From positions 62,001 to 126,000 of IMG/VR virus record IMGVR_UViG_3300033049_000066: a stretch of 64,000 nucleotides of DNA; one strand, written 5' to 3'. The notes beneath the pieces are model-generated. The model saw only the letters and a program-made list of their open reading frames with translations, was not told where the DNA came from and made no database searches. The first letter of the stretch is position 1. Each line of letters begins with the position of its first letter. A program made the translations under genes and the position numbers. Shown in pieces: positions 14,508-34,790 of this stretch.

Positions 14508-15755
14508 CTATAAATAAAAGTATGGACATCTATAAACATTTATGCACGAAGCCTCATAATTCACACCATCTCAAGCGTTATTATCAATTTTTGATTGAAT
14601 GCAGAGAACACAATGTGACTATCATAACTAATAAAGAAGTACACCATATATGCCCTAAGGCATCTGATTTATTTCCGGAGTTTAGTAATCTAAATTTGTA
14701 TGACTGGAATAAAATTGAGTTAACCTATCGTCAACATTTAATCGCACATTGGATGCTCTGGAAAGCGTATGGTGGCTCACAAGCCTACGCATTCTATGCA
14801 ATGAACAATCAAGTGAGCAAACGAGATGGGTGTAGAGTATGTCATAGTAAAATATATGAACAGGCTAAACTTGATGCTAGTATTACAATATCAAATACAA
14901 ACAGAGGATTCGCAGTATATGTTGATTCTGAAGGGCACAAAATTCGGTGCAAAATTAATGATTACCGAGTTAAAAATGGAACGTTGACATCGACTAGCAA
15001 AGGCCGCCAGTATACAGCACGTAGTGAAGAATCAAGAGCCCGGACTAGTGCATCTCTTAAAGGTAAGACTTACGGGCCTATGCAGGTTAGGCATCGGATA
15101 TTACGAAGAAAAATAAAAGTCCAGAAAGAATTGTTTTTCGATCAAAAAGAATATAAGTTTGAAATGATAGATAACTTGTATATTAATGCAAATCATATAA
15201 AGGTATTTACAAACGGCAGGCAGGTGTGGAACACCGACGGTAAGTATCGGCGGGTTAGCATAAAATTACCAATTTCTCCTCCTGGATGGTCATTTATTAA
15301 TCCTAAAATAATAATCAAGGCATTGGATATTACCGACACTAACTTTACAAGTTATATTGAGTGTTTCGGGACCGATTTGCCAAGTAAATATCATACACTA
15401 AGTTTATGCAAAATAGGAAAAGTGATGTTATATTGCACAACATTAATGAAAAATATTTACATTGACAAGGACAGTATTGCTACATACGGAATTCCCAGTA
15501 ATTGTACTCTGCCTAATCGCTGTACATTGCGATAATACTATCAATTATTGGGTGCCTGCAAATATCCTTTCGTTCCAGCTGACACGCTGCAATTGCTTTA
15601 TTCGGGTGTTGTTTTAACCGAGCTAATAGATCGGTTAACCCGTTACCTTTTGTAAATTTCTTATCGACTTGCTCAAGATCTCCGGTTATTACGATTTTAC
15701 TTCCTTTGCCGATACGTGTTAGCAGCATCTCCATTTGATTAACTGATGTCGACTG
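14508..15755. mobile_element. homing-endonuclease element carrying a replacement phoH 3' end
   Basis: HNH gene with its own TATAAATA (14509-14516) plus a divergent phoH C-terminus, inserted after the phoH DE-F codons. Confidence 0.75.
14522..15535 (+). CDS. HNH homing endonuclease
   Basis: EVHHICPK...NKIELTYRQHLIAHWML HNH motif; NUMOD3-like RSEESRARTSASLKGK. Confidence 0.85.
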   Translation: MDIYKHLCTKPHNSHHLKRYYQFLIECREHNVTIITNKEVHHICPKASDLFPEFSNLNLYDWNKIELTYRQHLIAHWMLWKAYGGSQAYAFYAMNNQVSKRDGCRVCHSKIYEQAKLDASITISNTNRGFAVYVDSEGHKIRCKINDYRVKNGTLTSTSKGRQYTARSEESRARTSASLKGKTYGPMQVRHRILRRKIKVQKELFFDQKEYKFEMIDNLYINANHIKVFTNGRQVWNTDGKYRRVSIKLPISPPGWSFINPKIIIKALDITDTNFTSYIECFGTDLPSKYHTLSLCKIGKVMLYCTTLMKNIYIDKDSIATYGIPSNCTLPNRCTLR

Positions 15756-16244: not shown

Positions 16245-16380
16245 TGAATATCTCCTGTGTTGTTAATTTATTTAACAATAAAACCACCACCGCAGTATGA
16301 GCACTTAAATGATGCTTTTCTATGATAAATATAGATGGTTCCATTAAATAGCAACCGCACATGAAGTCATAAATAACATT

Positions 16381-18396: not shown

Positions 18397-21300
18397 ATGT
18401 CGGTTAGGTATAAATTTAAGAGAATAATCTGGCTTTGTGATACAACAGATAAGAAACTTGCGACTGGTCAAGGTCTTCTTTACATGTGGCCTGATCCGAA
18501 TCCGTTAGTACCGCCGAAGTTCGGACTTATTAAGGCAAGTTCATATACTGGTGCAACGCCGGTCGAGGCATTCGAACGACGATATCCAAAATCATCCCAT
18601 AAAATTGATCAAGATAATATCGAACTTTTCGTGTATGAAATTGACGATAACAGGTTACACGATGATAAGATTAGAGCGGAGATCCACAAACGGTATATCC
18701 GTAACCCTGGGAGATTTCCGTTTGATGCTTATGATAAAGTTAATCATGTTGCACCGCAGGGTATTAATAACGAATCTTGCTTAGGTTATAATTACAATGA
18801 ACACAGCGGTGCCCTATTAGGATTAATCAAAGAATATTTCGGGATATTAGTAGTAGCAGACACGAGGGATCCGTGGATCCCTCGTGAAGCAGACCAAGAA
18901 AATACAGCAAAAGAAATCGCAAAAAAGTTAAAAACCAATGCACGGATTGCGTTAAACGGCCATACCGGATATGCGAAAATTATGATTACAATGGTCGCAA
19001 TACACCGGCATATATATCCATCAGATGGAGCATTTATTTTAGCAACTACGCCTGTAATTGACACGCTGTCGGGTATTATTTCGGATGCCACCGATTGGTA
19101 TTATGGTGGCAATCGGTGTAGACGAACTGTAGTCTATGACCGGGAGGCGCTAAATAATGGTAAAACCATTGCTGCAATGCGACAAGAAGCGGATAATGGC
19201 GACATAGTTTTCCTGAGCTTATCAGTTCAGGATATGCGATTTCAAGACAACGCATCATTGGTTATTGATGATAAAGAATTACGAGAAAAATACAAAGATT
19301 TAATTAGTGATGAGATTGAAATTGACCTATGGATAAGAGATGAAGCGCATTTTAACTATGCTGGCCTAGTAACCTCGAAGGTATTTGCTAGTTTGGATGA
19401 TCGGTGTCGATATATTATCGACACTAGCGCTAGCATTAACAAAATCGCTAACAATTACCACCCGGACTCAATAATAGACCGAGGCTTATTTTGGGCGCTT
19501 GCGCATGAAACAGAAAGGAAAACACCTCATATCCATATCGAGTCCCTTTCCGGAATGTGTTACGATACGCTAAGTCCCGACGTTCGTGAGGTATATAACG
19601 AAACCGAAGGATGGAGCCCATCAAAAATGACCGAACTTTTGCCGAACGGTCAGTTTAGAAGTTTAATCGCGATTAACTATATTTTAGAGAAACAGTATAT
19701 TTGCACCGATGAAAAGGAAGAAAATCCTTTGTCAATCATCAATGACATTGACTTACCGTATAAGTGTCGCCGCGTTGGCATGCATCTTTTTCCGGAGGGT
19801 GTCAACGGTACCCCTGCGAATATATACTTAAAAAAACTCGCAGATGATTTAAACGCAATGCCTCAATGGAGTCAGAAAGATGCATACGGGATAGCAAGGG
19901 CAATATTCATAACTCCTTATAATTTTAAAAAACATGCAGCAGCTCATACAAAGTCTAGCAACTCGTATCGCGATGTCATCGACTATCTCATGCAAACGTA
20001 TACTCATGTCGTTATTCTGACCCACAGGCGGTGGATCTTAGGTTCGAATATTCCGCCACTCGGACATGCAGTACAATGGGATAAAATTGTTGATCCATAC
20101 TGTCAAGAACAATTTGCCCCTGGAAGATTATTTAGAATCATGCCATGGAAAACTGCGATTAAGATATATGACCTGGCACCAGGCCACTATCTACAGAATT
20201 CAATATCGGAGATTGCGGCCAGCAGCAGTAAAATATTAAAGCAACCCGATGTTACGATCCTGTTACGTAATATTAGTTTTACAAGATATGAAAAAGGGAT
20301 CGGCATGAGATCTTGGACTCCGGAAGAGGTGTTTCGGCCATATAATAACATGCTTACTCGAAAATCCTTGTCGACGATTGGAGCCAGTATCTTAACAACA
20401 TTATCGTCCGTTGAGATTAATGCGTTGGCTTCGGCTTCATCTTCGTTAAAAAAGAACAAGGTGCTCGGAACAAACGAAAAAACTCAGCTTGTTGCTGAAA
20501 CCGGTACAGAGAAAGCTGCACCGAAGAACCAAAAAAGAAACAAGCAAGGCAAGGCGCCGGTTATGAATGACCGTAAAACATTAGATTTAATTAATAATAT
20601 ACTATTAGAAATCCCGTTTGTTGCTGTATCTACTAACATTTTGTTAATTGATGAAATATTAGATCATAGTATGATTCGGAGGATGTTTAATAGTATCATA
20701 GTTGACACTCTGCTAAATATCATAGCTAATAACCAAATTTTTAAACATGAATTACAGGATAAATTAACAGATATTCATTTAGCATTTGGGATATTGCCAT
20801 TTCTGGATATGCACGACGAGATATTTAAAAATACAACATTAAAAAAAGGTGAAGGCATTGTGTTTGTAAATTGCGAGGCCGCCGAATTTTTTGCAAATGA
20901 ATTTATTCGAGTATTTGCAATACCCAAACATACAACAGAAACAGTAGCAGTAGGAAACGCATTAAGTGGTAGTATACCGTTTTATTTGCAAAAACTGTTG
21001 CCTTGTGCTAATATAATATGTATTGAGAATAGTGATTACTATATTAGTCACTTAAAATCGTTGGGATTTACGTGTATAAAATACAACAACTTAAAGGAAA
21101 ACATGGTAAAAATTAAATACTGGGCCATTAACGCACCTTACCAAAAGGATGCGGGTGGTGTGAATGATAGCGGTAACAAACAGGGCAGCTATTGGTTTGC
21201 TTTCGTCGAAAAGATATTTGCGGTCGGACCCCCGGATGCGAAAATATTTAGTATCTCACCAAAGGCTATATTTGGAGCAGGCAATTATGGAAAATCAGCG

Positions 21301-21924
21301 TCAAAGGTAGCGAAAATATGCAATCATGGAAATTTTGTTCATATATGGCCGGACCTTGGGTCTCGGTTCCCTGGTGTAAGTATTCCAATTTGTGGATATG
21401 CAATAGATTTAGCAAAAACTACACCATATGCGACAGTTGATGGTTACGCTGACACCGATACGGTTATAATTAATAGCGATTACCCCGCCCCTTTTTATTT
21501 TTCTCCGGCTGCTGTTCGTATTATACAAAACTCATGGCAACAACACAAATCATTTGCGAATTTTGTAGAAAACTTGAACGCTAAGGACGACAATGTCGTC
21601 CTTAGAGTTAATGGTGGTCGTTTTAAACTCTGGAAGAAACTGTTTGTTGGGTTTGATCGAGATACCCAAAATAATCTTCAAGGAGCAGTAATCAACGATA
21701 ATGAACTCCCGGGGTATTTGTCAGCTAGTAAATGTAAACTATGGGAATATATCTTTAAAGTAATGGGTTGTGAAAAAGGTAATTCGGTTACTGGCGTATT
21801 CCAGCATTTACCAATAATGGACGATATGACCAGATCATATACTGATCAGGAATGGTTTTCTGCCTTTAACATCGATGAGCAAATGCAAAGAGAGATCGCA
21901 AAATTCCTACGTGAGGTCAAATGA
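18397..21924 (+). CDS. SF2 helicase-like / DNA adenine methyltransferase-like fusion (restriction-modification type)
   Basis: degenerate Walker A GHTGYAK, DEAH, GRLFR; C-terminal INAPYQ (NPPY-like) followed by a TRD-like region. Confidence 0.65.
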   Translation: MSVRYKFKRIIWLCDTTDKKLATGQGLLYMWPDPNPLVPPKFGLIKASSYTGATPVEAFERRYPKSSHKIDQDNIELFVYEIDDNRLHDDKIRAEIHKRYIRNPGRFPFDAYDKVNHVAPQGINNESCLGYNYNEHSGALLGLIKEYFGILVVADTRDPWIPREADQENTAKEIAKKLKTNARIALNGHTGYAKIMITMVAIHRHIYPSDGAFILATTPVIDTLSGIISDATDWYYGGNRCRRTVVYDREALNNGKTIAAMRQEADNGDIVFLSLSVQDMRFQDNASLVIDDKELREKYKDLISDEIEIDLWIRDEAHFNYAGLVTSKVFASLDDRCRYIIDTSASINKIANNYHPDSIIDRGLFWALAHETERKTPHIHIESLSGMCYDTLSPDVREVYNETEGWSPSKMTELLPNGQFRSLIAINYILEKQYICTDEKEENPLSIINDIDLPYKCRRVGMHLFPEGVNGTPANIYLKKLADDLNAMPQWSQKDAYGIARAIFITPYNFKKHAAAHTKSSNSYRDVIDYLMQTYTHVVILTHRRWILGSNIPPLGHAVQWDKIVDPYCQEQFAPGRLFRIMPWKTAIKIYDLAPGHYLQNSISEIAASSSKILKQPDVTILLRNISFTRYEKGIGMRSWTPEEVFRPYNNMLTRKSLSTIGASILTTLSSVEINALASASSSLKKNKVLGTNEKTQLVAETGTEKAAPKNQKRNKQGKAPVMNDRKTLDLINNILLEIPFVAVSTNILLIDEILDHSMIRRMFNSIIVDTLLNIIANNQIFKHELQDKLTDIHLAFGILPFLDMHDEIFKNTTLKKGEGIVFVNCEAAEFFANEFIRVFAIPKHTTETVAVGNALSGSIPFYLQKLLPCANIICIENSDYYISHLKSLGFTCIKYNNLKENMVKIKYWAINAPYQKDAGGVNDSGNKQGSYWFAFVEKIFAVGPPDAKIFSISPKAIFGAGNYGKSASKVAKICNHGNFVHIWPDLGSRFPGVSIPICGYAIDLAKTTPYATVDGYADTDTVIINSDYPAPFYFSPAAVRIIQNSWQQHKSFANFVENLNAKDDNVVLRVNGGRFKLWKKLFVGFDRDTQNNLQGAVINDNELPGYLSASKCKLWEYIFKVMGCEKGNSVTGVFQHLPIMDDMTRSYTDQEWFSAFNIDEQMQREIAKFLREVK

Positions 21925-24506: not shown

Positions 24507-25280
24507 ATGTCAAATCCGTATAGTACACTTGGACTAACCTCGTCTGCCACTAGTGATGAAGTAAAACGTGCTTATAGAAAGCTGGCGATGAAATTCCACC
24601 CGGACCGCAATGACGGAAAGGATGCCAAGTTCAAGGAGATCAAGTCAGCGTACGATCAGATACAAAAAGGCCCGAGCCAAGACCCCGACGCGTGGTCGAC
24701 ATTTCGCAAGGAAGGTGGTTTTGCTGGAGCAGCCGGCCGGAGTTCAGTTTTTGATGATTTCTTCAATAATCGCAGACCGAACTACAAACCATCTACTGTA
24801 AATTTGTCAGCGCAAATACCATTCGCAGACGCTATATGCGGTAATCCTCAATTTTTAAAAATAAATGTCCATGGTAAATCAAAAACTGTTAAGGTTGAAA
24901 TACCTGCTGGGTTAACTCATGGTGAGAAGATAAAATACGCAAAGCTAGTCGATGGCATTGATGTTATCATTTCCTTTATAGTTGAGCCAACTCCTATGTG
25001 GGAATTGGACAAGCTAGATTTAATTCAAACACCAGATATAAGTATTTGGGATTTAATAACAGGCGGGGAGTTAGACGTTTCGTTAATTAATGGTAAAGTA
25101 ATACGCCTAAAGATTCCGGCCGGAACTCAACCTAACACCGTAATGCGGGTACAAGGAAAAGGAGTGCAATCACGTGTAACTAAAGTATTATACGGCGACA
25201 TGCTAGTTAAACTAAATGCCACGATACCAAAGGACATTCCAGCTGATCTTTTAAATATGATTAGGAAGGTCAACAGCTAA
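24507..25280 (+). CDS. dnaJ: DnaJ/CbpA-like chaperone (no Zn finger)
   Basis: J-domain with HPD ([14 protein letters not shown]), C-terminal IPAGTQP...GKG...GD. Confidence 0.92.
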
Positions 25281-25672: not shown

Positions 25673-27931
25673 ATGCAAATCAATCCAGAAATCGAGCAGA
25701 TAACCGACTACGCAATTGCTCTCGCAAAACGGCAGCATCAGGAATATGTATTAGTTGAACATTTGCTGGTCGCATTAATAAGTTACGAACCATTTTACAA
25801 TTGTTTAAAAGGTTACGGTGTTAATATCGACGCAATGGTGAATGACATTGAGCTGTACCTGCATAATTTACCGGCAGCTCCGAGCACTGTCGAAAAGCCA
25901 AAACGAACTAACAGCATAGAGCGAGTGTTCAACCGTGCTGTAACGCAGGTTATATTTAGTGGTCGGCGCTTTGTTACTACAATTGATTTATTCTTGGCGA
26001 TCTCGTCTGAGGCAAGCAGCCACGCATCATATTTTATTTTAAAATATGGCGTTGATGACAAGGAGGCGATCGCATCGTACTGGAATGATAACTACAGCGA
26101 TATCGGTGGGAAGATGAGCGATACGCAATCAGACGAGGTGCTTGAAGAACATTGCACAAACGTATCGGCCAAGGCAGCAGCAGGTGAGCTCGAGCCGCTT
26201 ATTGGGCGAGAGGCCGAAGTGAAGGACGCGATAGAAATCCTCGCTAAGAAATTTAAGTCCAATGTGCTGATGGTCGGGGAGCCAGGTGTAGGCAAAACCG
26301 TCATCTTAGAAGGGCTCGCACAGAAAATCAACGCCGACGAAGTGCCGACGTTCATGAAGGGACACACCGTCTGGGAGCTCAACATCGGTGACATGCTCGC
26401 TGGCAGCAAGTACCGAGGAGAATTTGAAGAGAAATTTAAGAAAGTGATCAAGGCCTTGGAAGCGTCGGGCAAGGGTATACTTTTTATCGACGAAGCTCAC
26501 ACTATGAAGGGTGCTGGCAGCGGCGCAGGATCATCGTTGGATTTCGCGAACATGCTGAAGCCGGTGATCACACGCGGCAAGATCAAGGTCGTCGCCTGCA
26601 CCACCTGGGACGAATACTACGAATCCTTCGAGAAAGATAAGGCATTGATGCGCAGATTTTACAAACTAATTGTCGACGAACCAGATCACGACACCACAGT
26701 GAAGATTTTAACGGGCGTGGCGAAACGTCTGTCAGCATATCACAATGTGAAAATCGACCCGAGTGCTATCGCGTCAACCGTGGACTTGAGTACTCGCTAC
26801 ATTCACGACAGATTCAACCCAGACAAATCAATCGACATCTTAGACGCGGCCTGCGCTAAGGAACGTGCGAGTGACAACCACGACACGCTAATTAAAACTG
26901 AACATATCATTCAGCAACTAAGCAAAGTCACCGGCGTACCTACAGAACGTCTAAGCAATGAAAAAAGCAAGACACTATTGACACTGCGTGGCAATATCGA
27001 CAGCAAATTATTCGGCCAAGAAGATGCGGTGGAAGAAGTACTTAATAAAATTTACATCAACTTTGGTGGATTAGCCGAAGAAAATAAACCAGTCGCAAGC
27101 TTCTTGTTTCTTGGGCCAACCGGCACAGGTAAAACCGAGCTAGCTAAGCTAATCAGTGAAAACTTAGACATGGAACTATTACGTTACGATATGTCCGAGT
27201 ACATGGAAAAACATACAGTGGCATCACTTATTGGTGCGCCACCGGGTTATGTCGGCTACGAAGAGTCAGGTGGTGGTGGCAAGCTAATCTCAGATATTAG
27301 CAAACATCCATTCTCTGTACTGTTACTTGACGAAGTTGAGAAAGCTCACCCTGACGTGTTCAACGTGCTGCTGCAGGTCCTGGACGAAGGTAAGATTACT
27401 AGTCGCAGCGGAAAATCAGTGTCACTGCGAAATACAATCGTCATCATGACGTCAAATCTTGGCGCAGCTGACAATGAGAAAAATAACATTGGTTTCACAG
27501 ACCTGGCCCGCAGCGGCGAAGAAGATAAAGCAGTTAAAGAATTCTTTAAACCTGAGTTCCGCAACAGACTTGACGGTATTGCTAAGTTCAAGAAACTTGA
27601 AGATATAAATGTGAAGAAAATTGTTGTCAAGTTCATAAACGAACTAAAAGTCAGCTTGAAATCTAAGGGGATTGCATTCAACGCAACAGAGGCGGCCATC
27701 AATCATATTGCTGATACTGGTTACGATTCAGCACTTGGAGCACGGCCAATTAAACGACAGATCTCAGATGTGTTTAAACAGCCACTAAGTAAACGAATAT
27801 TATTTGAAGAATTAAGCAATTGCACAATTACCGCAGATTATGTCGACGGAGAAATTGTATTTACTGACACATGCGTTCCGGTAATCCCAGAGCTAAATCC
27901 CGAACCACATATTTTAACCCAAGATATTTAA
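25673..27931 (+). CDS. clpA: ClpA-type AAA+ chaperone/protease ATPase
   Basis: Clp N-domain, GEPGVGKT/FIDEAH, GPTGTGKT/LDEVEKAH, FKPEFRNRLD; 752 aa, no ClpB middle domain. Confidence 0.92.
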   Translation: MQINPEIEQITDYAIALAKRQHQEYVLVEHLLVALISYEPFYNCLKGYGVNIDAMVNDIELYLHNLPAAPSTVEKPKRTNSIERVFNRAVTQVIFSGRRFVTTIDLFLAISSEASSHASYFILKYGVDDKEAIASYWNDNYSDIGGKMSDTQSDEVLEEHCTNVSAKAAAGELEPLIGREAEVKDAIEILAKKFKSNVLMVGEPGVGKTVILEGLAQKINADEVPTFMKGHTVWELNIGDMLAGSKYRGEFEEKFKKVIKALEASGKGILFIDEAHTMKGAGSGAGSSLDFANMLKPVITRGKIKVVACTTWDEYYESFEKDKALMRRFYKLIVDEPDHDTTVKILTGVAKRLSAYHNVKIDPSAIASTVDLSTRYIHDRFNPDKSIDILDAACAKERASDNHDTLIKTEHIIQQLSKVTGVPTERLSNEKSKTLLTLRGNIDSKLFGQEDAVEEVLNKIYINFGGLAEENKPVASFLFLGPTGTGKTELAKLISENLDMELLRYDMSEYMEKHTVASLIGAPPGYVGYEESGGGGKLISDISKHPFSVLLLDEVEKAHPDVFNVLLQVLDEGKITSRSGKSVSLRNTIVIMTSNLGAADNEKNNIGFTDLARSGEEDKAVKEFFKPEFRNRLDGIAKFKKLEDINVKKIVVKFINELKVSLKSKGIAFNATEAAINHIADTGYDSALGARPIKRQISDVFKQPLSKRILFEELSNCTITADYVDGEIVFTDTCVPVIPELNPEPHILTQDI

Positions 27932-27968: not shown

Positions 27969-28007
27969 GTTACTCGATGTTTGATTTACAATAGCATAAA
28001 TAGTAAT

Positions 28008-28379
28008 ATGAAAACCTCATCAATTAATTTAATTCCGTACACCGCATTTGGTTCCGCCACAGGAAACTATGATCCGCTAGTCAACAGTGGAGATTTTAGC
28101 GGTGACCCCGGCAAGGCCGCAGCATATTATTCCAAGGACAAGAGCGTACAGACTGCCTCTTGGTACCTCATTGGATTCATCGGCGTCATCACCATCGAAG
28201 CTACACTTGAGAGCGATGGTACTACAGCAACATATTTTCCAATTCGTGTTATAGGCGATGGAGTAAATGCGTTAACTGAAAATGACTTCGAAAATTTAGA
28301 AGGTAATTATACTTGGCTTAGGGCTACTGTAACGCAGTTCACAGCTGGACAGATACAAAAAGTATCAATTGGGTACTAA
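28008..28379 (+). CDS. putative virion structural protein
   Basis: ATG after CATAAATA (27995); beta-rich, GNYTWLRA motif. Confidence 0.6.
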   Translation: MKTSSINLIPYTAFGSATGNYDPLVNSGDFSGDPGKAAAYYSKDKSVQTASWYLIGFIGVITIEATLESDGTTATYFPIRVIGDGVNALTENDFENLEGNYTWLRATVTQFTAGQIQKVSIGY

Positions 28380-28389
28380 AAGGTAATCT

Positions 28390-29046
28390 ATGAAAACAAT
28401 AGTCGTTTACGGTGGAAGATTTCAGCCACCGCATTTAGGACATAAGGGGTCGTATGATTGGCTTGTAAATGAATTCCCAAATGCTGATGTATACATGTCA
28501 TCGGCAGAAAAAGCCCCCGGTCCAAAAGATCCATTTATGTGGTCGGAGAAGAAACGTCTAGCAGTCGCAATGGGTGTTCCACCTAGCAAATTTATTAAAA
28601 TTAAAAATGCGTACGTTGAAGAATTGATTCGCAGTGTCATCCCTTACAATCCAAAAACTACGGTATTAATTATCGCACTAAGCCAGAAAGATGGTGATCG
28701 TTTAGTTAGCAAAAACGTTGACGATGAAGGATACGCAATTAAAAAGAATGGTGACCGCGCACCGATACAGTGGTTACCTAAGAACCCAGAGCCTGTAGTC
28801 AACGGCCACTTTTACGTCGTTGCAACCCCCACCGTCACTTTCAAGGTTGCCGGCAAAAACATCACCGGCGCAACAGAAATCCGTGATATGTATACAAACG
28901 GGGATGAGAAAACACGAGATCGCATTTTAAAAGATTTATACGGTGAGGTCAAGCCAGCGGTAAGAAAGCTATTTGATCGTAGACTTGGTGCGATACAAAC
29001 TGAAGATGTCCTTAGAGAATTTATAGAATTCGTTAACAAATTTTAA
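28390..29046 (+). CDS. HIGH-family (cytidylyltransferase-like) nucleotidyltransferase
   Basis: YGGRFQPPHLGH motif; GATEIR (SxTxIR-like). Confidence 0.85.
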   Translation: MKTIVVYGGRFQPPHLGHKGSYDWLVNEFPNADVYMSSAEKAPGPKDPFMWSEKKRLAVAMGVPPSKFIKIKNAYVEELIRSVIPYNPKTTVLIIALSQKDGDRLVSKNVDDEGYAIKKNGDRAPIQWLPKNPEPVVNGHFYVVATPTVTFKVAGKNITGATEIRDMYTNGDEKTRDRILKDLYGEVKPAVRKLFDRRLGAIQTEDVLREFIEFVNKF

Positions 29047-29079
29047 AAACATCAGAACTCAATGGCATAAATACTGCTA

Positions 29080-32000
29080 ATGAATATCACAGAGCTCGAC
29101 AATTATAAGCTTGCGAAAGCAATTGATTTTAACACTGATTTAAACCCACAGATTTTCGTCAACGACAAAATGCGGCCGGTAGTGCGTGAGAAATTGATGG
29201 AGATAGCAGATCATTTTCGTGAATTCTTAGGCGTACAAAATATTGCCTTAGTAGATATAGAAGTTAGCGGATCCAATGCTGCTTACAGCTACACTCCGCA
29301 TAGCGACATTGACTTACACCTAATCGTAGATTTTACGCAACTTCCAGACAGTGATGTTTACAGAGAGCTATTCGACGCGAAAAAATATCAATATAACAAT
29401 CACCACGATATAAAAATTAAAGGGTACGAAGTTGAATTGTACGTCCAAGACGCAGCACAAAAACATCATTCCCTCGGCAGCTACAGCGTTCTGAATGACA
29501 AGTGGAATAAAATTCCAACAAAGCAACGCGCAAATCTCGACGACGACGCCACACTTTTAAAATATGAAAAATTAAAGGACCTTGCCATCCGCGCCTTGGC
29601 AGCCGATGACAACGAGTACTTAAATAAAGTGCTTGACGTAGTGAAGAAATACAGACAGGCTGGGCTTGATCAGCACGGTGAGTTCGGCCCTGAGAATTTA
29701 GCATTTAAAATGCTTCGCACTGATGGCTACTTTGCTAAGCTATGGACGAAGAAACGCAATCACGTAGATACCGAGCTTAGCCTAGAAACCGCTGTAGAAG
29801 AGCCGGACACCTTAGCCCAAGAATTGATGGCAGAATTTGTCAGCGGCGTATCACCTCAACAAACAGAAAGTATGATCAAGCGCATGTTCAAAGCTCGCTC
29901 AGGTCTGTTTGAAGATTTTGATTACACCTACATTCAAGACAGTGCCGCCAAGCTAGTGACCTTTGAAGCATCGTACGCAGGCAACCTCGGTGCCATGGAA
30001 GTTATGCAATTTTATCGTGACGCCCCAACCGATCACGTGGACCTACTAACGAGACTTATTGCCGCTGACAAAACTAAAGAAGCATGGCAGCTTATACAAA
30101 AAGTAACCGGCACCCAGTTACAAGGACAAGAGTTCAACGAAAGCGAAGCTAAATTTATCGCTGGCATGCGGTCAACCTTTGGTGCTGCCCTAGATGACAC
30201 TAGCGATACAGCCATAATTGAAGCATGGGACGTATCTAACCAGACGCCGGTGCCATCACCAGGCTACAATAAAATTATCGCTATGAGCACGACAGTACTA
30301 GAAGACGGTACTAGATGTACCGATATGGGGCTTGTAGCAAATTTCCTGGTTGCTGAAGCTAGTAGGAATAATCCGAAGGTCTTAGAGTCAAACACAGAAG
30401 AGACAATCACTAATATCGTACAAGAATTATTTAATTCAATGTCCGGGGTGACTCCGGTAGTTGGCAATTCATACGCAATTTTACAAATAATCGCACTAGC
30501 CTCAGGAGAGTCGATAATATTAAATGGGTCACGGACTCCACTTACGATAACAGAAGTAAATCAAAAAGATACCTATGTTGAGTACGTGTTTAAGACACAT
30601 GACGGTATTGTGCGCAAATTCCCAGACGAGTTGCATCTTGGAGCTCGTGTTGACAAAACATTCCTCTTTGAAACACGTGAACAATTAGGATCGATGGAAT
30701 CATTTTTAAGACTTAAAATGTCAAACTGGGCCATTACTGATCGGTTCTTAACTGAGGTAAGTACTGGCATCTGCGAAGACCCCATGACATGGATCCAAGA
30801 CGACGACCAAGATTTTATTAACCCGGTGCCAATTATTACCGACACCGAAGTATTTAACTTCATGGATGAAATAGACAGAACAGCCTATGAGATGTTCCCT
30901 GAGAATAAAGGTTTATCAGGCTCGGCATACGGCATGGCAATGAAAAAAGCTCGGGCAAAAATAGGAACAGTTGAGCAAGTGCCGATGCAGCAAATTGTTT
31001 CAACAGAAAAATATTTAAAGACAAGTCAACTTGCCGCAATTTTAAATGGCAAAGCAAAATCATCAAGTGACTATCCTATATTATATAAGCAAGGTAACAC
31101 ATATATCGCAGGTGATGGCAACCACCGCATTGCGGCACAGTTTATTAAACAACAACCTACAATTAAAGCCTTGGTCCTAGACGGCGCAAAAATACTGGAT
31201 GAAAATTTCATCGTCAATGAACAAGACATCGACTTAGTGGAAGAGATCCGGGCAGAATTTGAAGTACATAAAAATATCAAAGAGAATTTCATTGTCAACG
31301 AACAAGGTCGCATTGTTAAAGGATCGAATACAACAGATGACGTTGGCGTAGACGAAATTAAAATCCAAGCTAAAAAGATGGGCTTCAACGTATCAATTGA
31401 TGGCGTACCTGAAATTCCAAAGAACGGTGTACCTAAGATAATTAATTATACTGCTAAGATAGAAAACGCACATGCATCCGCATTGCGAGAGTTTCTAAAT
31501 AGTAATCAGTCATTGCTTGAATCACAAGACGATTTTAAATCAGTAAGAGAATTTACAAATTCGTACAAAACTAGTCCAATTATCGGTGAGAAATATGTGT
31601 ACACATCATTGATGATTACTCCGGCGATGGGATTTATAAACCTTGCACATACCGAAGAGGCAGAGTTAATTAAAATCAAAGCTGGTTATGTTTATTTTCG
31701 ATTAGCTAGCGGCAAGATTGCACAATATCCAAAAAACGACTCCGATTTAAATTCATCACTACAGCAAATATTATTTTTTAAAACCCTGACCGAGTTTGAT
31801 CAGTTTAAGGCCGCACTTATTTTAAAATTCGGACAATGGCGTATAACCCACAAGTTACTTGAAGATGCAGAACCTAAAATATTCAAATCAGCCGCGGTAC
31901 GCGAGATGAAGTGGGAAGACTCTGCTCACATTGAGTACATGGATGATCGCCTTGCTTGGGTCGAATCACAAATTGTCGAAGGCGTTACGTTGTTTGATTC

Positions 32001-34197
32001 AAACAGCAACGCTAATACTGATTATTTTTTAAATATCAATAGTGACGCTCCAGTAATAAACAAAAAATTTATACTAGCCTTCCAAGCTCTTGTTAATAAT
32101 AGAATAATTATTAGCGAAGTACATACCGGTAGATTAATCGACTTTAATGACACCGAGTATAAAATTAAACTTGACAGTGGCAAAATTCTAACGTACCCGG
32201 ATTGTAGCAGCTCTAAAAAGATGCTTACTAAATCATTCTTGTTTGACTCCAATGACAAATATAATAAGTTCCGTACAATAATCCAACTTAAATTTAAAAA
32301 GACACTGCCGCAGATTAGTCTCGCAGCGAGTAGCATACAGCAAGACAACTTAACTGAATCGTTTCTTACAGAACTCAACATGGCCCCGGGTAATTTACAG
32401 AAGGCCGTAAATAAAATACTAAGTTCCGCTGATCCGCACGTTGGTGTTGAGTTTGAAGTAATTATGCCCGCCGACGCTGAGATGAATCCGGAAATCAACC
32501 TCCGCACAACACGGCAAGATATCTTAGATTTCTTTACGTACGACGACGAAGAATCATTTGAGAACTTTAATGATGTTTACCAAGAATGGCTACAAGAACA
32601 AGAGTCGGCGTGGTCCGAACAAAAAACAAATGAAATACTAAATGATCCGACTGAGGAGTACGACGACAAGCGTGAGTTCATGGTTGACTATACCCTGAGC
32701 GACAATGCCACCTCGCAGCTAAAAAGTATTTACAAAAAGTTAAAAATTAAAGACGACTTAGAAATTACAGATGAAATTGCGGAGTCTGTGCTTGACATGG
32801 CAGAACTCGCATATAAAGATTACGGATCCGCAGATAACTGGCCGACATCGGACGGTATGAGTCCGTACGTATTATTGTATCATGAAATATTCGTTGTTGA
32901 TAAAGAAGACGCTACAGAAAAGTTTAAAGAGATGGCCACTGAGGAATTTTATTCTACCGAAATGCTAGTAGACGAAGATGAGTACTCCATTGGTGCGTGG
33001 CTTCAGTCACTTCAGATATCAAGTATGGGTGACCTATATAGAGAGTTTGATTACGACTTAACGTGGACAGGTGGTACTAACGTTAGTGCCAATTTTGATG
33101 AAGAAATCGCCTATCAAATAGCAGATGAGCTAGGAAATCTTATTGGTGAGGACGTAACAGTTGCTGGTGAAGATAGCGACGATAGCGACAACGCGCCGGA
33201 CACGAGCGTGAACTGGGTTATTACAAATGACTCGTCAATTCGACCTAATAACGATGATGATTCTGCTCTTGAAATTATTACGCCAGTAATGGATTATTCT
33301 ACCGGGATAAAAACACTCAATAAGGTCTTTGATTTTCTAAGTGAGAAAAATGCTTACGCAAATGACTCTACAGGCCTGCACATTAATGTAAGTCTAGGAA
33401 ATATAGATCACACAAAATTAAATTACACTAAATTAATCGTTATGCTCGGCGATTCACATATATTAAAACAGTACAATAGAGAATTCAACGAATACGCTGT
33501 AGACGCATTGACTAATTTAAGTACGATGCTAGATGCAAAGCAAGGATACGATCAAGATAAGAAAGCTAAAGCCGTGTCCTTTGCAAATATGATGGGCAAA
33601 ATGAAAAGTGATTTTAACAATGCTGTAGCAAGCTCATTTGACAAAATTGATTTCGGCAAGTACAATTCAATCGGGCTCAAAGATAATTATATTGAATTTA
33701 GATCCGGCGGCGGCGCTAATTATCTTGACGACTTTGGAGATATTGTCGGAATGATTAACCGGTTCGTTGTAGCGTACGCAGTAGCAGCTGACCCAGACGC
33801 ATATAAGAATGAGTACGGTAAGAAATTATATAAACTTGCTACAAATGTCGGTCTAAGTCCGGCCTCACCTACAGCAATGCAATTATTTGCGAAATTTAGT
33901 TCCGGCATGATGACAAAGGAAGAGCTTATCCGGCAGGTTAAGATGTCAAAGACCATCTCAGACGAGCCGGTGGACACTGGTGATCGTTTAAGAACTGCGA
34001 AGAGCACCGCGACTGAAGCATTCATAGAAATTTCTGACAAGTGGGATCTATCAGCCGTCGAGACAGACAGACTGTGGAACAACGCGATTGCTATCGAGCT
34101 CGAGAGACTAGCAGATTTAAGAAATTATCTCAGGCCACCACGAGCTGCAAAAGCAGCATACACCAATTTAATGAACGATAAAGGATACTATGAATGA
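29080..34197 (+). CDS. multidomain polyprotein: Pol-beta NTase + ParB-like + three copies of an unknown domain + amidoligase
   Basis: GS...SDIDLH...ELYVQD (from aa 64); GDGNHR (aa 678); GVEFE, LEIITP, STGLHINVS, IEFRSGGG (aa 1120-1545). Confidence 0.8.
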   Translation: MNITELDNYKLAKAIDFNTDLNPQIFVNDKMRPVVREKLMEIADHFREFLGVQNIALVDIEVSGSNAAYSYTPHSDIDLHLIVDFTQLPDSDVYRELFDAKKYQYNNHHDIKIKGYEVELYVQDAAQKHHSLGSYSVLNDKWNKIPTKQRANLDDDATLLKYEKLKDLAIRALAADDNEYLNKVLDVVKKYRQAGLDQHGEFGPENLAFKMLRTDGYFAKLWTKKRNHVDTELSLETAVEEPDTLAQELMAEFVSGVSPQQTESMIKRMFKARSGLFEDFDYTYIQDSAAKLVTFEASYAGNLGAMEVMQFYRDAPTDHVDLLTRLIAADKTKEAWQLIQKVTGTQLQGQEFNESEAKFIAGMRSTFGAALDDTSDTAIIEAWDVSNQTPVPSPGYNKIIAMSTTVLEDGTRCTDMGLVANFLVAEASRNNPKVLESNTEETITNIVQELFNSMSGVTPVVGNSYAILQIIALASGESIILNGSRTPLTITEVNQKDTYVEYVFKTHDGIVRKFPDELHLGARVDKTFLFETREQLGSMESFLRLKMSNWAITDRFLTEVSTGICEDPMTWIQDDDQDFINPVPIITDTEVFNFMDEIDRTAYEMFPENKGLSGSAYGMAMKKARAKIGTVEQVPMQQIVSTEKYLKTSQLAAILNGKAKSSSDYPILYKQGNTYIAGDGNHRIAAQFIKQQPTIKALVLDGAKILDENFIVNEQDIDLVEEIRAEFEVHKNIKENFIVNEQGRIVKGSNTTDDVGVDEIKIQAKKMGFNVSIDGVPEIPKNGVPKIINYTAKIENAHASALREFLNSNQSLLESQDDFKSVREFTNSYKTSPIIGEKYVYTSLMITPAMGFINLAHTEEAELIKIKAGYVYFRLASGKIAQYPKNDSDLNSSLQQILFFKTLTEFDQFKAALILKFGQWRITHKLLEDAEPKIFKSAAVREMKWEDSAHIEYMDDRLAWVESQIVEGVTLFDSNSNANTDYFLNINSDAPVINKKFILAFQALVNNRIIISEVHTGRLIDFNDTEYKIKLDSGKILTYPDCSSSKKMLTKSFLFDSNDKYNKFRTIIQLKFKKTLPQISLAASSIQQDNLTESFLTELNMAPGNLQKAVNKILSSADPHVGVEFEVIMPADAEMNPEINLRTTRQDILDFFTYDDEESFENFNDVYQEWLQEQESAWSEQKTNEILNDPTEEYDDKREFMVDYTLSDNATSQLKSIYKKLKIKDDLEITDEIAESVLDMAELAYKDYGSADNWPTSDGMSPYVLLYHEIFVVDKEDATEKFKEMATEEFYSTEMLVDEDEYSIGAWLQSLQISSMGDLYREFDYDLTWTGGTNVSANFDEEIAYQIADELGNLIGEDVTVAGEDSDDSDNAPDTSVNWVITNDSSIRPNNDDDSALEIITPVMDYSTGIKTLNKVFDFLSEKNAYANDSTGLHINVSLGNIDHTKLNYTKLIVMLGDSHILKQYNREFNEYAVDALTNLSTMLDAKQGYDQDKKAKAVSFANMMGKMKSDFNNAVASSFDKIDFGKYNSIGLKDNYIEFRSGGGANYLDDFGDIVGMINRFVVAYAVAADPDAYKNEYGKKLYKLATNVGLSPASPTAMQLFAKFSSGMMTKEELIRQVKMSKTISDEPVDTGDRLRTAKSTATEAFIEISDKWDLSAVETDRLWNNAIAIELERLADLRNYLRPPRAAKAAYTNLMNDKGYYE

Positions 34198-34790
34198 AAC
34201 CGCAAGAATTTATAACAGAAGCCCGAAGCGATAGTATTATATTGATTGACTTTCAGCCAGCGTATCAAAGCGAGGATTTCGGCTATGACGATGCCATCGA
34301 CCAGGCTGTTAACTACATTAATAAAAAACAGCCATCCGTGACTGCTTTTTATAACGGACAGGATGTAGGCATTGAGGATACTCCCTCAGAGGTTCTTTGG
34401 CATTACATGGAACATGGACTAAACGAAGATCTCGGACATTTATTTACGTTCAAAGAGAAGTCATACGCTTGGTTAAGATCATGGATAGACGAAGGGGTTG
34501 ACGAAGCATTGATTATTAAAGTTATTCGGTACTTGGTTATGAATGACATGAATGATAGTCGAAGCATAGAAGATGAAGACTGGTTAAAACTAGTTGGTGA
34601 AGATTTTGACTTCTACGAAGATAGAGAGATGGGAATTTTTATACCTGAGATTAATATTGCTACATTACAAACACTAAACAAATCACTACTTGGTGGAGGT
34701 GGTCAACATGAATGCCTTAAGGAAATGCAGGTGCTAATGAATGCGTTTAATATTAAATATAAATTAGTACAAGAATGGATTTACGGTTAA
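34194..34790 (+). CDS. cysteine-hydrolase (isochorismatase/nicotinamidase fold)-like protein with capsid-targeting-like leader
   Basis: IILIDFQP and GGGQHECL; leader MKPQEFITE. Confidence 0.55.
   Translation: MKPQEFITEARSDSIILIDFQPAYQSEDFGYDDAIDQAVNYINKKQPSVTAFYNGQDVGIEDTPSEVLWHYMEHGLNEDLGHLFTFKEKSYAWLRSWIDEGVDEALIIKVIRYLVMNDMNDSRSIEDEDWLKLVGEDFDFYEDREMGIFIPEINIATLQTLNKSLLGGGGQHECLKEMQVLMNAFNIKYKLVQEWIYG

Follow-up and report, generated by a model that had tools for sequence, protein, structure and literature searches.

What kind of protein is made from a phage gene in which a nucleotidyltransferase, a ParB-like domain, an amidoligase and three related modules share a single open reading frame (ORF), and where might such a protein act? 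The question is raised by P0001, a polyvalent protein of 1705 amino acids (aa) encoded in a stretch of 64,000 nucleotides (nt), hereafter the window, that corresponds to bases 62001-126000 of a 293,278-bp IMG/VR virus record (IMGVR_UViG_3300033049_000066) derived from seawater metagenomes. Comparison with its relatives reveals a fixed nucleotidyltransferase head and a fixed amidoligase tail, separated by a swappable middle of cassettes that other phages encode as small separate genes. This architecture, together with the capsid-targeting-like starts of the stand-alone cassettes, suggests a multi-effector protein that would be packaged and injected.

Fixed ends and a swappable middle

A word search for relatives of P0001 returned 180 long proteins, 120 of which (1008-2234 aa) were listed. 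The N-terminal domain is conserved in all 120 and the C-terminal amidoligase module in nearly all of them. In a BLAST comparison with 38 relatives, aa 1-240 of P0001 showed 47-76% identity and aa 1090-1704 showed 27-50%; aa 360-738 and 789-1089 may be retained, missing or replaced, depending on the relative. The closest relatives, of about 1010-1070 aa, consist of aa 1-355, a 48-aa mini-domain and the amidoligase module only, and P0010 corresponds to P0001 without aa 555-726 and 806-1092. The variable parts of other members carry ParB_N, GNAT, ADP-ribosyltransferase (PF03496 and ART-PolyVal, PF18760), deaminase, and M48 and U49 peptidase domains, as well as DUF5661 and the cell-wall domains SLT, LysM and GH19. 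The peptidases occur in some relatives only, and Pfam scans found no peptidase family in P0001. Parts of the middle of P0001 are also found as genes of their own: aa 733-930 are colinear with the entire stand-alone protein P0198, and aa 580-715 with the stand-alone P0269.

A sequence-only reading of the window had proposed that P0001 is a polyvalent, modular protein, and this is borne out by the orthologues at the same position. P0011 (1115 aa) and P0014 (1434 aa) occupy the same DnaJ-ClpB-...-cytidylyltransferase-like-(this gene)-...-PolB locus, and both, like the minimal forms of about 1010-1070 aa, differ from P0001 in architecture. Since positional orthologues have different middles at one locus, the cassette idea stands. 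P0001 itself combines several unrelated effector domains in one phage polypeptide, i.e. the nucleotidyltransferase, the ParB-like domain, the amidoligase and the three modules. Even the "fixed" end can duplicate: the relative P0016 (1390 aa) contains two amidoligase modules, at aa 456-701 and 797-1310.

The N-terminal domain was assigned to the Pol-beta-type nucleotidyltransferases, as the sequence-only reading had done, on the basis of its match to phrog_36119 (Table 1) and of the characteristic motif hG[GS]-x9-13-Dh[DE]h with a third carboxylate. In P0001 the motif takes the form GS-x10-DID at aa 64-78 (G64 S65-x10-D76 I D78), with further carboxylates at E117/E119, and at least 90% of the 120 relatives retain the motif residues. 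The Pfam family NTP_transf_2 stayed below its gathering score for P0001 (15.9 bits versus 21); the relative P0038 scores 20.5 bits with the same family, and P0039 is assigned to PF01909 in a precomputed list. A sequence search of solved structures with this domain returned nothing meaningful, and stand-alone homologues were found in cyanophages, Maribacter phages and Lak phages. The N-terminus, MNITELDNYK, is conserved family-wide as MNI-x-EL.

At the other end lies a glutamine-synthetase-like amidoligase module, also recognised in the sequence-only reading, with the only Pfam family found above threshold in P0001 (Amidoligase_2, PF12224, aa 1348-1458, 37.9 bits versus a cut-off of 22). The module opens with the junction LTESFLTELNMAPG, a hydrophobic-x-Glu motif followed by [LI]-x-M-[ST]-P, and L-x-E-[LI]-x-M-[ST]-P is present in 28 of the 28 aligned relatives printed, near and distant ones alike. 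The motifs GVEFE (1122-1126), LEIITP (1397-1402), TGLHINVS (1431-1438) and IEFR (1538-1541) follow in order. The conserved acidic, His and Arg residues of the Pfam family are kept, and D1384, E1398, H1434, K1451, D1458, R1467, E1539, R1541 and R1561 are found in about 122 of 134 aligned rows. Nevertheless, P0001 departs from the Pfam family in three respects: the match covers only positions 20-140 of the 245 in the profile, an acidic insert of about 205 aa (aa 1136-1340, 25% D+E) separates the first strand, GVEFE, from the remainder, and a long conserved C-terminal tail extends to aa 1705. With its catalytic-type residues conserved, the module is predicted to have amidoligase activity, and on residue conservation both fixed ends look catalytically competent.

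The segment around GDGNHR had been called ParB/Srx-like. It has a single close homologue, P0269 (152 aa), with 44% identity across 88% of the segment. P0269 matches PHROG families annotated as "ParB-like partition protein" and phrog_33277 ("ParB-like") at E 3e-4, and phrog_17560 also matches the segment of P0001. In a profile-profile comparison with hhalign, the alignment of the segment was matched to ParB_N-bearing segments of five relatives with a probability of 95.9% (E 6e-9, 74 columns), the DGNHR of P0001 being paired with DGHHR of these relatives. The call rests on the fixed-profile search and on hhalign; a local jackhmmer run that joined P0001 to ParB segments at 2e-19 was not relied on, its database comprising only 269 sequences. 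The GDGNHR segment gave no Pfam match and no match to PDB sequences, also with a three-sequence profile, and tblastn of the segment against the phage collection returned nothing. An AlphaFold2 model of the segment, weak at a predicted local distance difference test (pLDDT) score of 65, has the element order beta-alpha-beta-beta-alpha-beta. Foldseek with this model placed sulfiredoxins in the top rows at E around 1, VIA-align gave none, and an ESM Atlas feature search yielded a weak ParB_N lead. Compared with the ParB/sulfiredoxin superfamily (ParB_N, PF02195; the DdrB-like ParB of phage polyvalent proteins), P0001 thus shares the DG(N/H)HR motif, the predicted order of elements and the profile match, but its domain is minimal (about 75 aa), falls below the Pfam thresholds and gives no significant hit in the fold search. 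On the profile evidence we accept the segment as ParB/Srx-like.

Table 1. Features of the P0001 locus, with positions in the window
Feature	Position	Strand	Residues of P0001	Remarks
Upstream neighbour	28390..29046	+		Cytidylyltransferase-like, 218 aa; GGRFQPPHLGH motif; directly upstream in all three orthologous loci
CATAAATA, T4-late-promoter-like motif	29066..29073	+		6 nt before the P0001 ATG
P0001, polyvalent protein	29080..34197	+		Intact ORF, 1705 aa
Pol-beta-type nucleotidyltransferase	29080..29799	+	1-240	phrog_36119, E 1.9e-37
Extension after nucleotidyltransferase	29800..30159	+	241-360	Common to closest relatives only
Module copy 1	30304..30756	+	409-559	Nearest relatives P0205 (28%) and P0013
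ParB/Srx-like cassette	30817..31224	+	580-715	Core 631-704; GDGNHR at 678-683
ENFIVNEQ copy 1	31201..31224	+	708-715	End of ParB-like cassette
ENFIVNEQ copy 2	31282..31305	+	735-742	N-terminal edge of mini-domain cassette; hydrophobic-x-Glu motif (V-N-E)
48-aa mini-domain, GRIVKGSNTTDDVGVDEIKIQAKKMGF...GVP	31306..31449	+	743-790	No Pfam family
Module copy 2	31450..31866	+	791-929	Nearest relative stand-alone P0141 (41%)
Module copy 3	31900..32322	+	941-1081	Nearest relative stand-alone P0134 (39%); 15-row clade, 100% support
Glutamine-synthetase-like amidoligase module	32347..34194	+	1090-1705	
Junction LTESFLTELNMAPG	32350..32391	+		Opens the amidoligase module
Downstream neighbour	34194..34790	+		198 aa; start overlaps P0001 stop (ATGA); begins MKPQEFITEA

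The repeated module, its origin and the junctions

The sequence-only reading had distinguished a domain of about 95 aa that occurs three times, from 30451, 31573 and 32047 (aa 458, 832 and 990; TPVVGNSY, SPIIGEKY and APVINKKF). The three copies are indeed related: pairwise Smith-Waterman scores were 70-77 versus shuffle means of 29-31 (z 8.2-9.6), and none of 1000 shuffles reached the observed values. The unit is not the one of 95 aa, but measures about 150 aa, as seen from stand-alone proteins of 140-170 aa, which make up many of the family members. Its N-terminal part, with three helices, contains an L-x-E-S/N motif and is followed by the part of about 95 aa. When one copy was searched against all six frames of the 293-kb genome, only the other two were found, and a search of the genome with a hidden Markov model found the module nowhere outside P0001. 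A profile of the three copies identified single copies in eight related long proteins (1e-10 to 1e-18).

The suggestion that the repeated domain is a new family holds in so far as the module is unnamed, since it belongs to no Pfam family and no PHROG and has no clear fold match in the PDB. However, it is not rare: a profile built from 11 copies found, among 1.84 billion representatives, 256 clusters (at 50% identity) with E<=1e-3, and 61 at 1e-10. In other proteins the module occurs in fusions with cytidylyltransferase-like, GNAT, NT5C, DUF6934 and amidoligase domains. A tblastn search of the GenBank phage collection with two stand-alone modules gave no match, and an ESM Atlas feature search with the module gave nothing.

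AlphaFold2 modelled aa 782-935 with a pLDDT of 86 and a predicted TM-score of 0.77, with three helices at the front, then a beta domain, another helix and a final strand. Foldseek found no match to this model in the PDB at E<=1e-3. With VIA-align the best match was to a designed binder (Z 6.0), followed by ring-building motifs of type III secretion systems (Z 4-5) and SH3/Tudor-like barrels (about 3.5-4); an "SH3-like beta core" is to be taken as a lead only. A search of BFVD returned only two uncharacterised proteins of uncultured phages, and a search of the Atlas gave TM-scores of 0.40 or lower. The near-invariant columns of the module contain only E, P and F, from which it follows that the module is probably not an enzyme; a binding role thus seems likelier than a catalytic one. 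The locus thereby exposes a widespread unnamed domain family that has a confident predicted fold and no clear relative among known folds.

The sequence-only reading had called the domain triplicated; whether the three copies arose by triplication in place can be judged from their relationships. Among the 156 proteins with the domain, P0001 alone has three copies (eight have two), and all three genomic copies lie in one ORF, which would agree with a recent tandem triplication inside this gene. Against this, the copies are mutually only 18-23% identical, in contrast to 41%, 39% and 28% with their nearest relatives in other proteins, and a repeat at the DNA level is lacking among them. In a 43-row tree they fall into three different subfamilies, with support of 100, 95 and 80, and the approximately unbiased (AU) test rejects a single clade of the three copies (difference in log-likelihood 94.7, p 0.0003), on a subset that was chosen after a first tree, the full tree having 149 rows. 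Triplication in situ was consequently dropped and can be given hardly any credence. By these phylogenetic comparisons the three copies are anciently diverged members of different subfamilies, nearer to stand-alone phage proteins of about 150 aa than to each other.

The octapeptide ENFIVNEQ occurs twice, as the sequence-only reading had observed, with the second copy starting at 31282 rather than 31283. The DNA of the copies is identical at 21 of 24 nt, the three differences all being synonymous. The pair had been regarded as an insertion scar, and a rearrangement junction is indeed apparent: FEVHKNIK, just before copy 2, matches the last strand of the module of P0010, which, together with the colinearity with P0269, identifies the junction as the product of a P0269-like gene inserted into a P0010-like ancestor. 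The ParB-like segment of P0071 likewise ends with LDENF. The scar is not a fresh one, however. Copy 2 is colinear with the N-termini of the stand-alone P0198 and P0150 (MKINDIVLEDGRI), both of which consist of the mini-domain and one module, and with the junction in P0010 (IKESFIVNENGRI); the stretch 733-930 of P0001 therefore equals a whole gene elsewhere. Moreover, 22 of 23 relatives have a hydrophobic-x-Glu motif ahead of the mini-domain, regardless of the upstream sequence. Judged from this conservation, copy 2 is a cassette edge kept by selection. A role of ENFIVNEQ as a general linker motif of the family was dropped, the sequence being found in P0001 and P0010 only.

The mini-domain that follows copy 2 is very well conserved, with the pattern GRIVKGxNTTxDVGxDEIKxQAKKxGFxVxKDGxPP. 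At the position that it occupies, ahead of the amidoligase module, other relatives have DUF5661/IF2_N-like segments.

Since the record is metagenome-derived and an assembler might in principle be misled by the ENFIVNEQ duplication, an assembly chimera, or genes fused by sequencing error, has to be weighed as a source of the long ORF. We consider this very improbable. The 120 listed relatives (1008-2234 aa) share the N-terminal domain and nearly all share the C-terminal module, synteny is conserved, and the two copies of the octapeptide differ at 3 of 24 nt. In addition, two seawater metagenome runs contain 100% of the sampled words of 28800-31800, including those across the junction, although these runs are possibly the source samples. 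No RNA run was found to contain the locus. In known phage genomes the gene itself is absent from what was searched: megablast against 50,697 GenBank phage records gave zero matches, tblastn of the whole protein against the phage collection matched the nucleotidyltransferase or amidoligase parts only and never the full length, and a search of viral contigs for loci related to that of P0001 found nothing.

Capsid-targeting-like starts and late-promoter-like motifs

By its DNA polymerase and head genes, this marine jumbo phage belongs to the T4 superfamily. Identities of 41-46% link its family-B DNA polymerase to the enzymes of Sinorhizobium phage Phosso and of Rak2/CBB/GAP32-type jumbo phages. 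The genome also contains a T4-like head module that comprises the portal gene, two small genes, the gene of a gp21-type (Peptidase_S77) prohead protease (G000 247032-247664; PF03420, 82.4 bits, at 247095-247526) and that of the major head protein.

In T4 the capsid-targeting sequence is MKTYQEFIAE (PMC8442874), in which residues 4 and 7 serve targeting and residues 8 and 10 cleavage by gp21; other proteins of T4-related phages have similar starts (PMC9026906). Among 148 representatives of the module family, 42 start with the loose motif M[KR]xxE[FI][ILV]xE (background 0.7%) and 17 with the strict form EF[ILV]xE (background 0.035%). Such a start is also found in eight genes of the phage's own genome, the downstream neighbour of P0001 included, versus 1 of 1605 internal Met controls; examples are MRANEFIMEG, MRSTEFINEG, MRAQEFIKE (twice), MKSAEFIVEG and MKSTEFITEW. 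When seven of the eight were compared (leaving out the downstream neighbour), they had nothing in common beyond residue 12. One gene with a capsid-targeting-like start is located between the portal and protease genes.

The downstream neighbour matches no Pfam or PHROG family. It is 71% identical to its counterpart in the orthologous locus, which begins with MKSKEFITEA. The second gene after that of P0001 (34870-35040) starts with MKVNEIIKET, which also resembles the T4 capsid-targeting sequence. On the other side, the cytidylyltransferase-like protein encoded directly upstream shares 31% identity (E 7e-21) with the N-terminal domain of P0145, a protein in which a module of about 150 aa is joined to that domain. 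The same fusion is found in P0168 of another phage, and amounts to a Rosetta-stone link to the gene upstream of P0001.

A motif resembling the T4 late promoter, CATAAATA, precedes the gene of P0001 and lies 5 nt before the ATG in both positional orthologues. On the plus strand genome-wide, 36 of 76 sites of NATAAATA are located within 40 nt upstream of a gene start, and the genes so preceded include the portal gene and several with a capsid-targeting-like start. Within the window, ATAAATA-N4-7-ATG was observed 6 times, with 2.2 expected. The spacing of NATAAATA is of two kinds: 5-7 nt before the ATG of 11 genes, which leaves no room for a Shine-Dalgarno sequence (e.g. at 29066-29073, 14509-14516, 16368-16375 and 27995-28002 in the window), and 19-28 nt before many others. 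If NATAAATA is a T4-type late promoter, the group with 5-7 nt would give leaderless or nearly leaderless messenger RNAs. The motif at 27995 points to the ATG at 28008, and not to the TTG at 27981, as the real start of that gene.

Proposed action and known systems

Among phage proteins, polyvalent ones are believed to be the first that the host encounters. For P0001 we infer late expression, packaging, cleavage at two junctions, ejection, and action on host targets. The gene would be transcribed late from the T4-type NATAAATA promoter, and the protein loaded into the prohead alongside internal proteins with a capsid-targeting-like start, one of them made from the overlapping next gene. The gp21-type prohead protease may cut P0001 at the hydrophobic-x-Glu cassette borders, i.e. 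after E714/E741 and after E1098, and the protein would then be ejected together with the DNA. Once in the host, the nucleotidyltransferase and the amidoligase would attach covalent modifications to targets of host or phage, the ParB-like domain might act as a nucleoside triphosphate-dependent DNA-binding or nicking unit, and the three modules, each with a specificity of its own, may serve in binding or inhibition, like the T4 internal protein IPI*. A "host-modifying" role of the cassette enzymes had likewise been inferred in the sequence-only reading. On balance we lean towards P0001 as a polyvalent multi-effector that acts by packaging and injection in this manner.

A number of observations weigh against this account. 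P0001 begins with MNITELDNYK instead of a canonical EFIxE motif, its gene is placed among chaperone and replication genes outside the head module, and the protein has no peptidase domain of its own. The ParB-like call was made by profile comparison, with P0001 below the Pfam threshold and a model pLDDT of 65, and the two conserved hydrophobic-x-Glu junctions could be merely structural domain edges. Internal modules are preceded by a capsid-targeting-like motif in 2 of 95 cases only, which is below background, so that cleavage of a polyprotein at every junction is unsupported; a cleavage motif of this type at each internal module junction was dropped as a candidate. The first three observations speak for a cytoplasmic, unpackaged P0001 that would act as a multi-enzyme scaffold during infection, e.g. 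in nucleotide, DNA or protein modification, as does the fusion of the module elsewhere to metabolic-type enzymes (cytidylyltransferase-like and NT5C). Such a protein might work with the cytidylyltransferase-like neighbour and the DnaJ/ClpB chaperones, its modules being interaction domains. We take this to be possible, if on the whole doubtful, since the late-promoter-like motif before the ATG is conserved in the orthologues, the gene overlapping the stop codon opens with a capsid-targeting-like start, the stand-alone cassettes have such starts as well, and relatives carry SLT, LysM and GH19 domains and Alt-like ADP-ribosyltransferases, which fit delivery by the virion. A more far-reaching proposal is that the module of about 150 aa with its EFIxE-type start represents a large undescribed family of capsid-internal, ejected proteins (IPI*-like) in marine T4-like jumbo phages, P0001 being a polyprotein of three binders and three enzymes cut by the gp21-type protease at the retained hydrophobic-x-Glu junctions, so that a single gene would supply the host cell with six separate effectors; this strikes us as unlikely.

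P0001 resembles the polyvalent proteins described by Iyer, Burroughs, Anand, de Souza and Aravind in 2017 (PMC5512222) in that several unrelated effector domains are joined in one long phage polypeptide, that architectures are shuffled among relatives with solo versions of domains in other phages, and that the family includes ParB-like, ADP-ribosyltransferase, GNAT, peptidase and lysozyme-type domains. It differs from them in the nucleotidyltransferase and amidoligase as fixed bookends, in the lack of the zincin-like processing peptidase that is usual there, and in a repeated module that matches no Pfam family, the LPD families that stem from that study included. P0001 fits the polyvalent-protein concept, yet as a variant of that theme: an amidoligase goes unmentioned in the study, and Pol-beta nucleotidyltransferases are placed there only in conjugative elements (PMC5512222).

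The second comparison is with the internal head proteins of T4 (IPI, IPII, IPIII and Alt). The phage resembles T4 in the order of its head genes and in encoding a gp21-type protease, several of its otherwise unrelated genes begin with EFIxE, as in MKTYQEFIAE, and the stand-alone versions of the cassettes carry an EFIxE-type start, while Alt provides a precedent for a large packaged enzyme. In contrast, P0001 itself begins with MNITELDNYK, the motif being found on its downstream neighbour and on stand-alone homologues instead, and it is far larger than any of the T4 internal proteins. A testable model is that a capsid-targeting sequence could load a polyvalent effector into the head, and that such an effector could arise by the fusion of small genes with capsid-targeting starts into a frame with two fixed enzyme ends. 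In abundant uncultured marine phages, both the pairing of nucleotidyltransferase and amidoligase and the unnamed module are candidate sources of new activities in anti-defence or host takeover.

Finally, some minor observations concern other genes of the phage. An ORF of 1175 aa at 18397-21924 in the window is without any Pfam or PHROG match. The phage encodes its own DnaJ (24507-25280) and a two-ring ClpA/ClpB-type AAA+ protein (25673-27931; phrog_4871, E 1.5e-234), and the synteny of these two genes is kept in two related jumbo-phage contigs. Beyond the window, the prohead protease gene is separated from the next gene of the head module, phrog_10922, by a homing-endonuclease-like gene (phrog_314, G000:C1:247664-248260).

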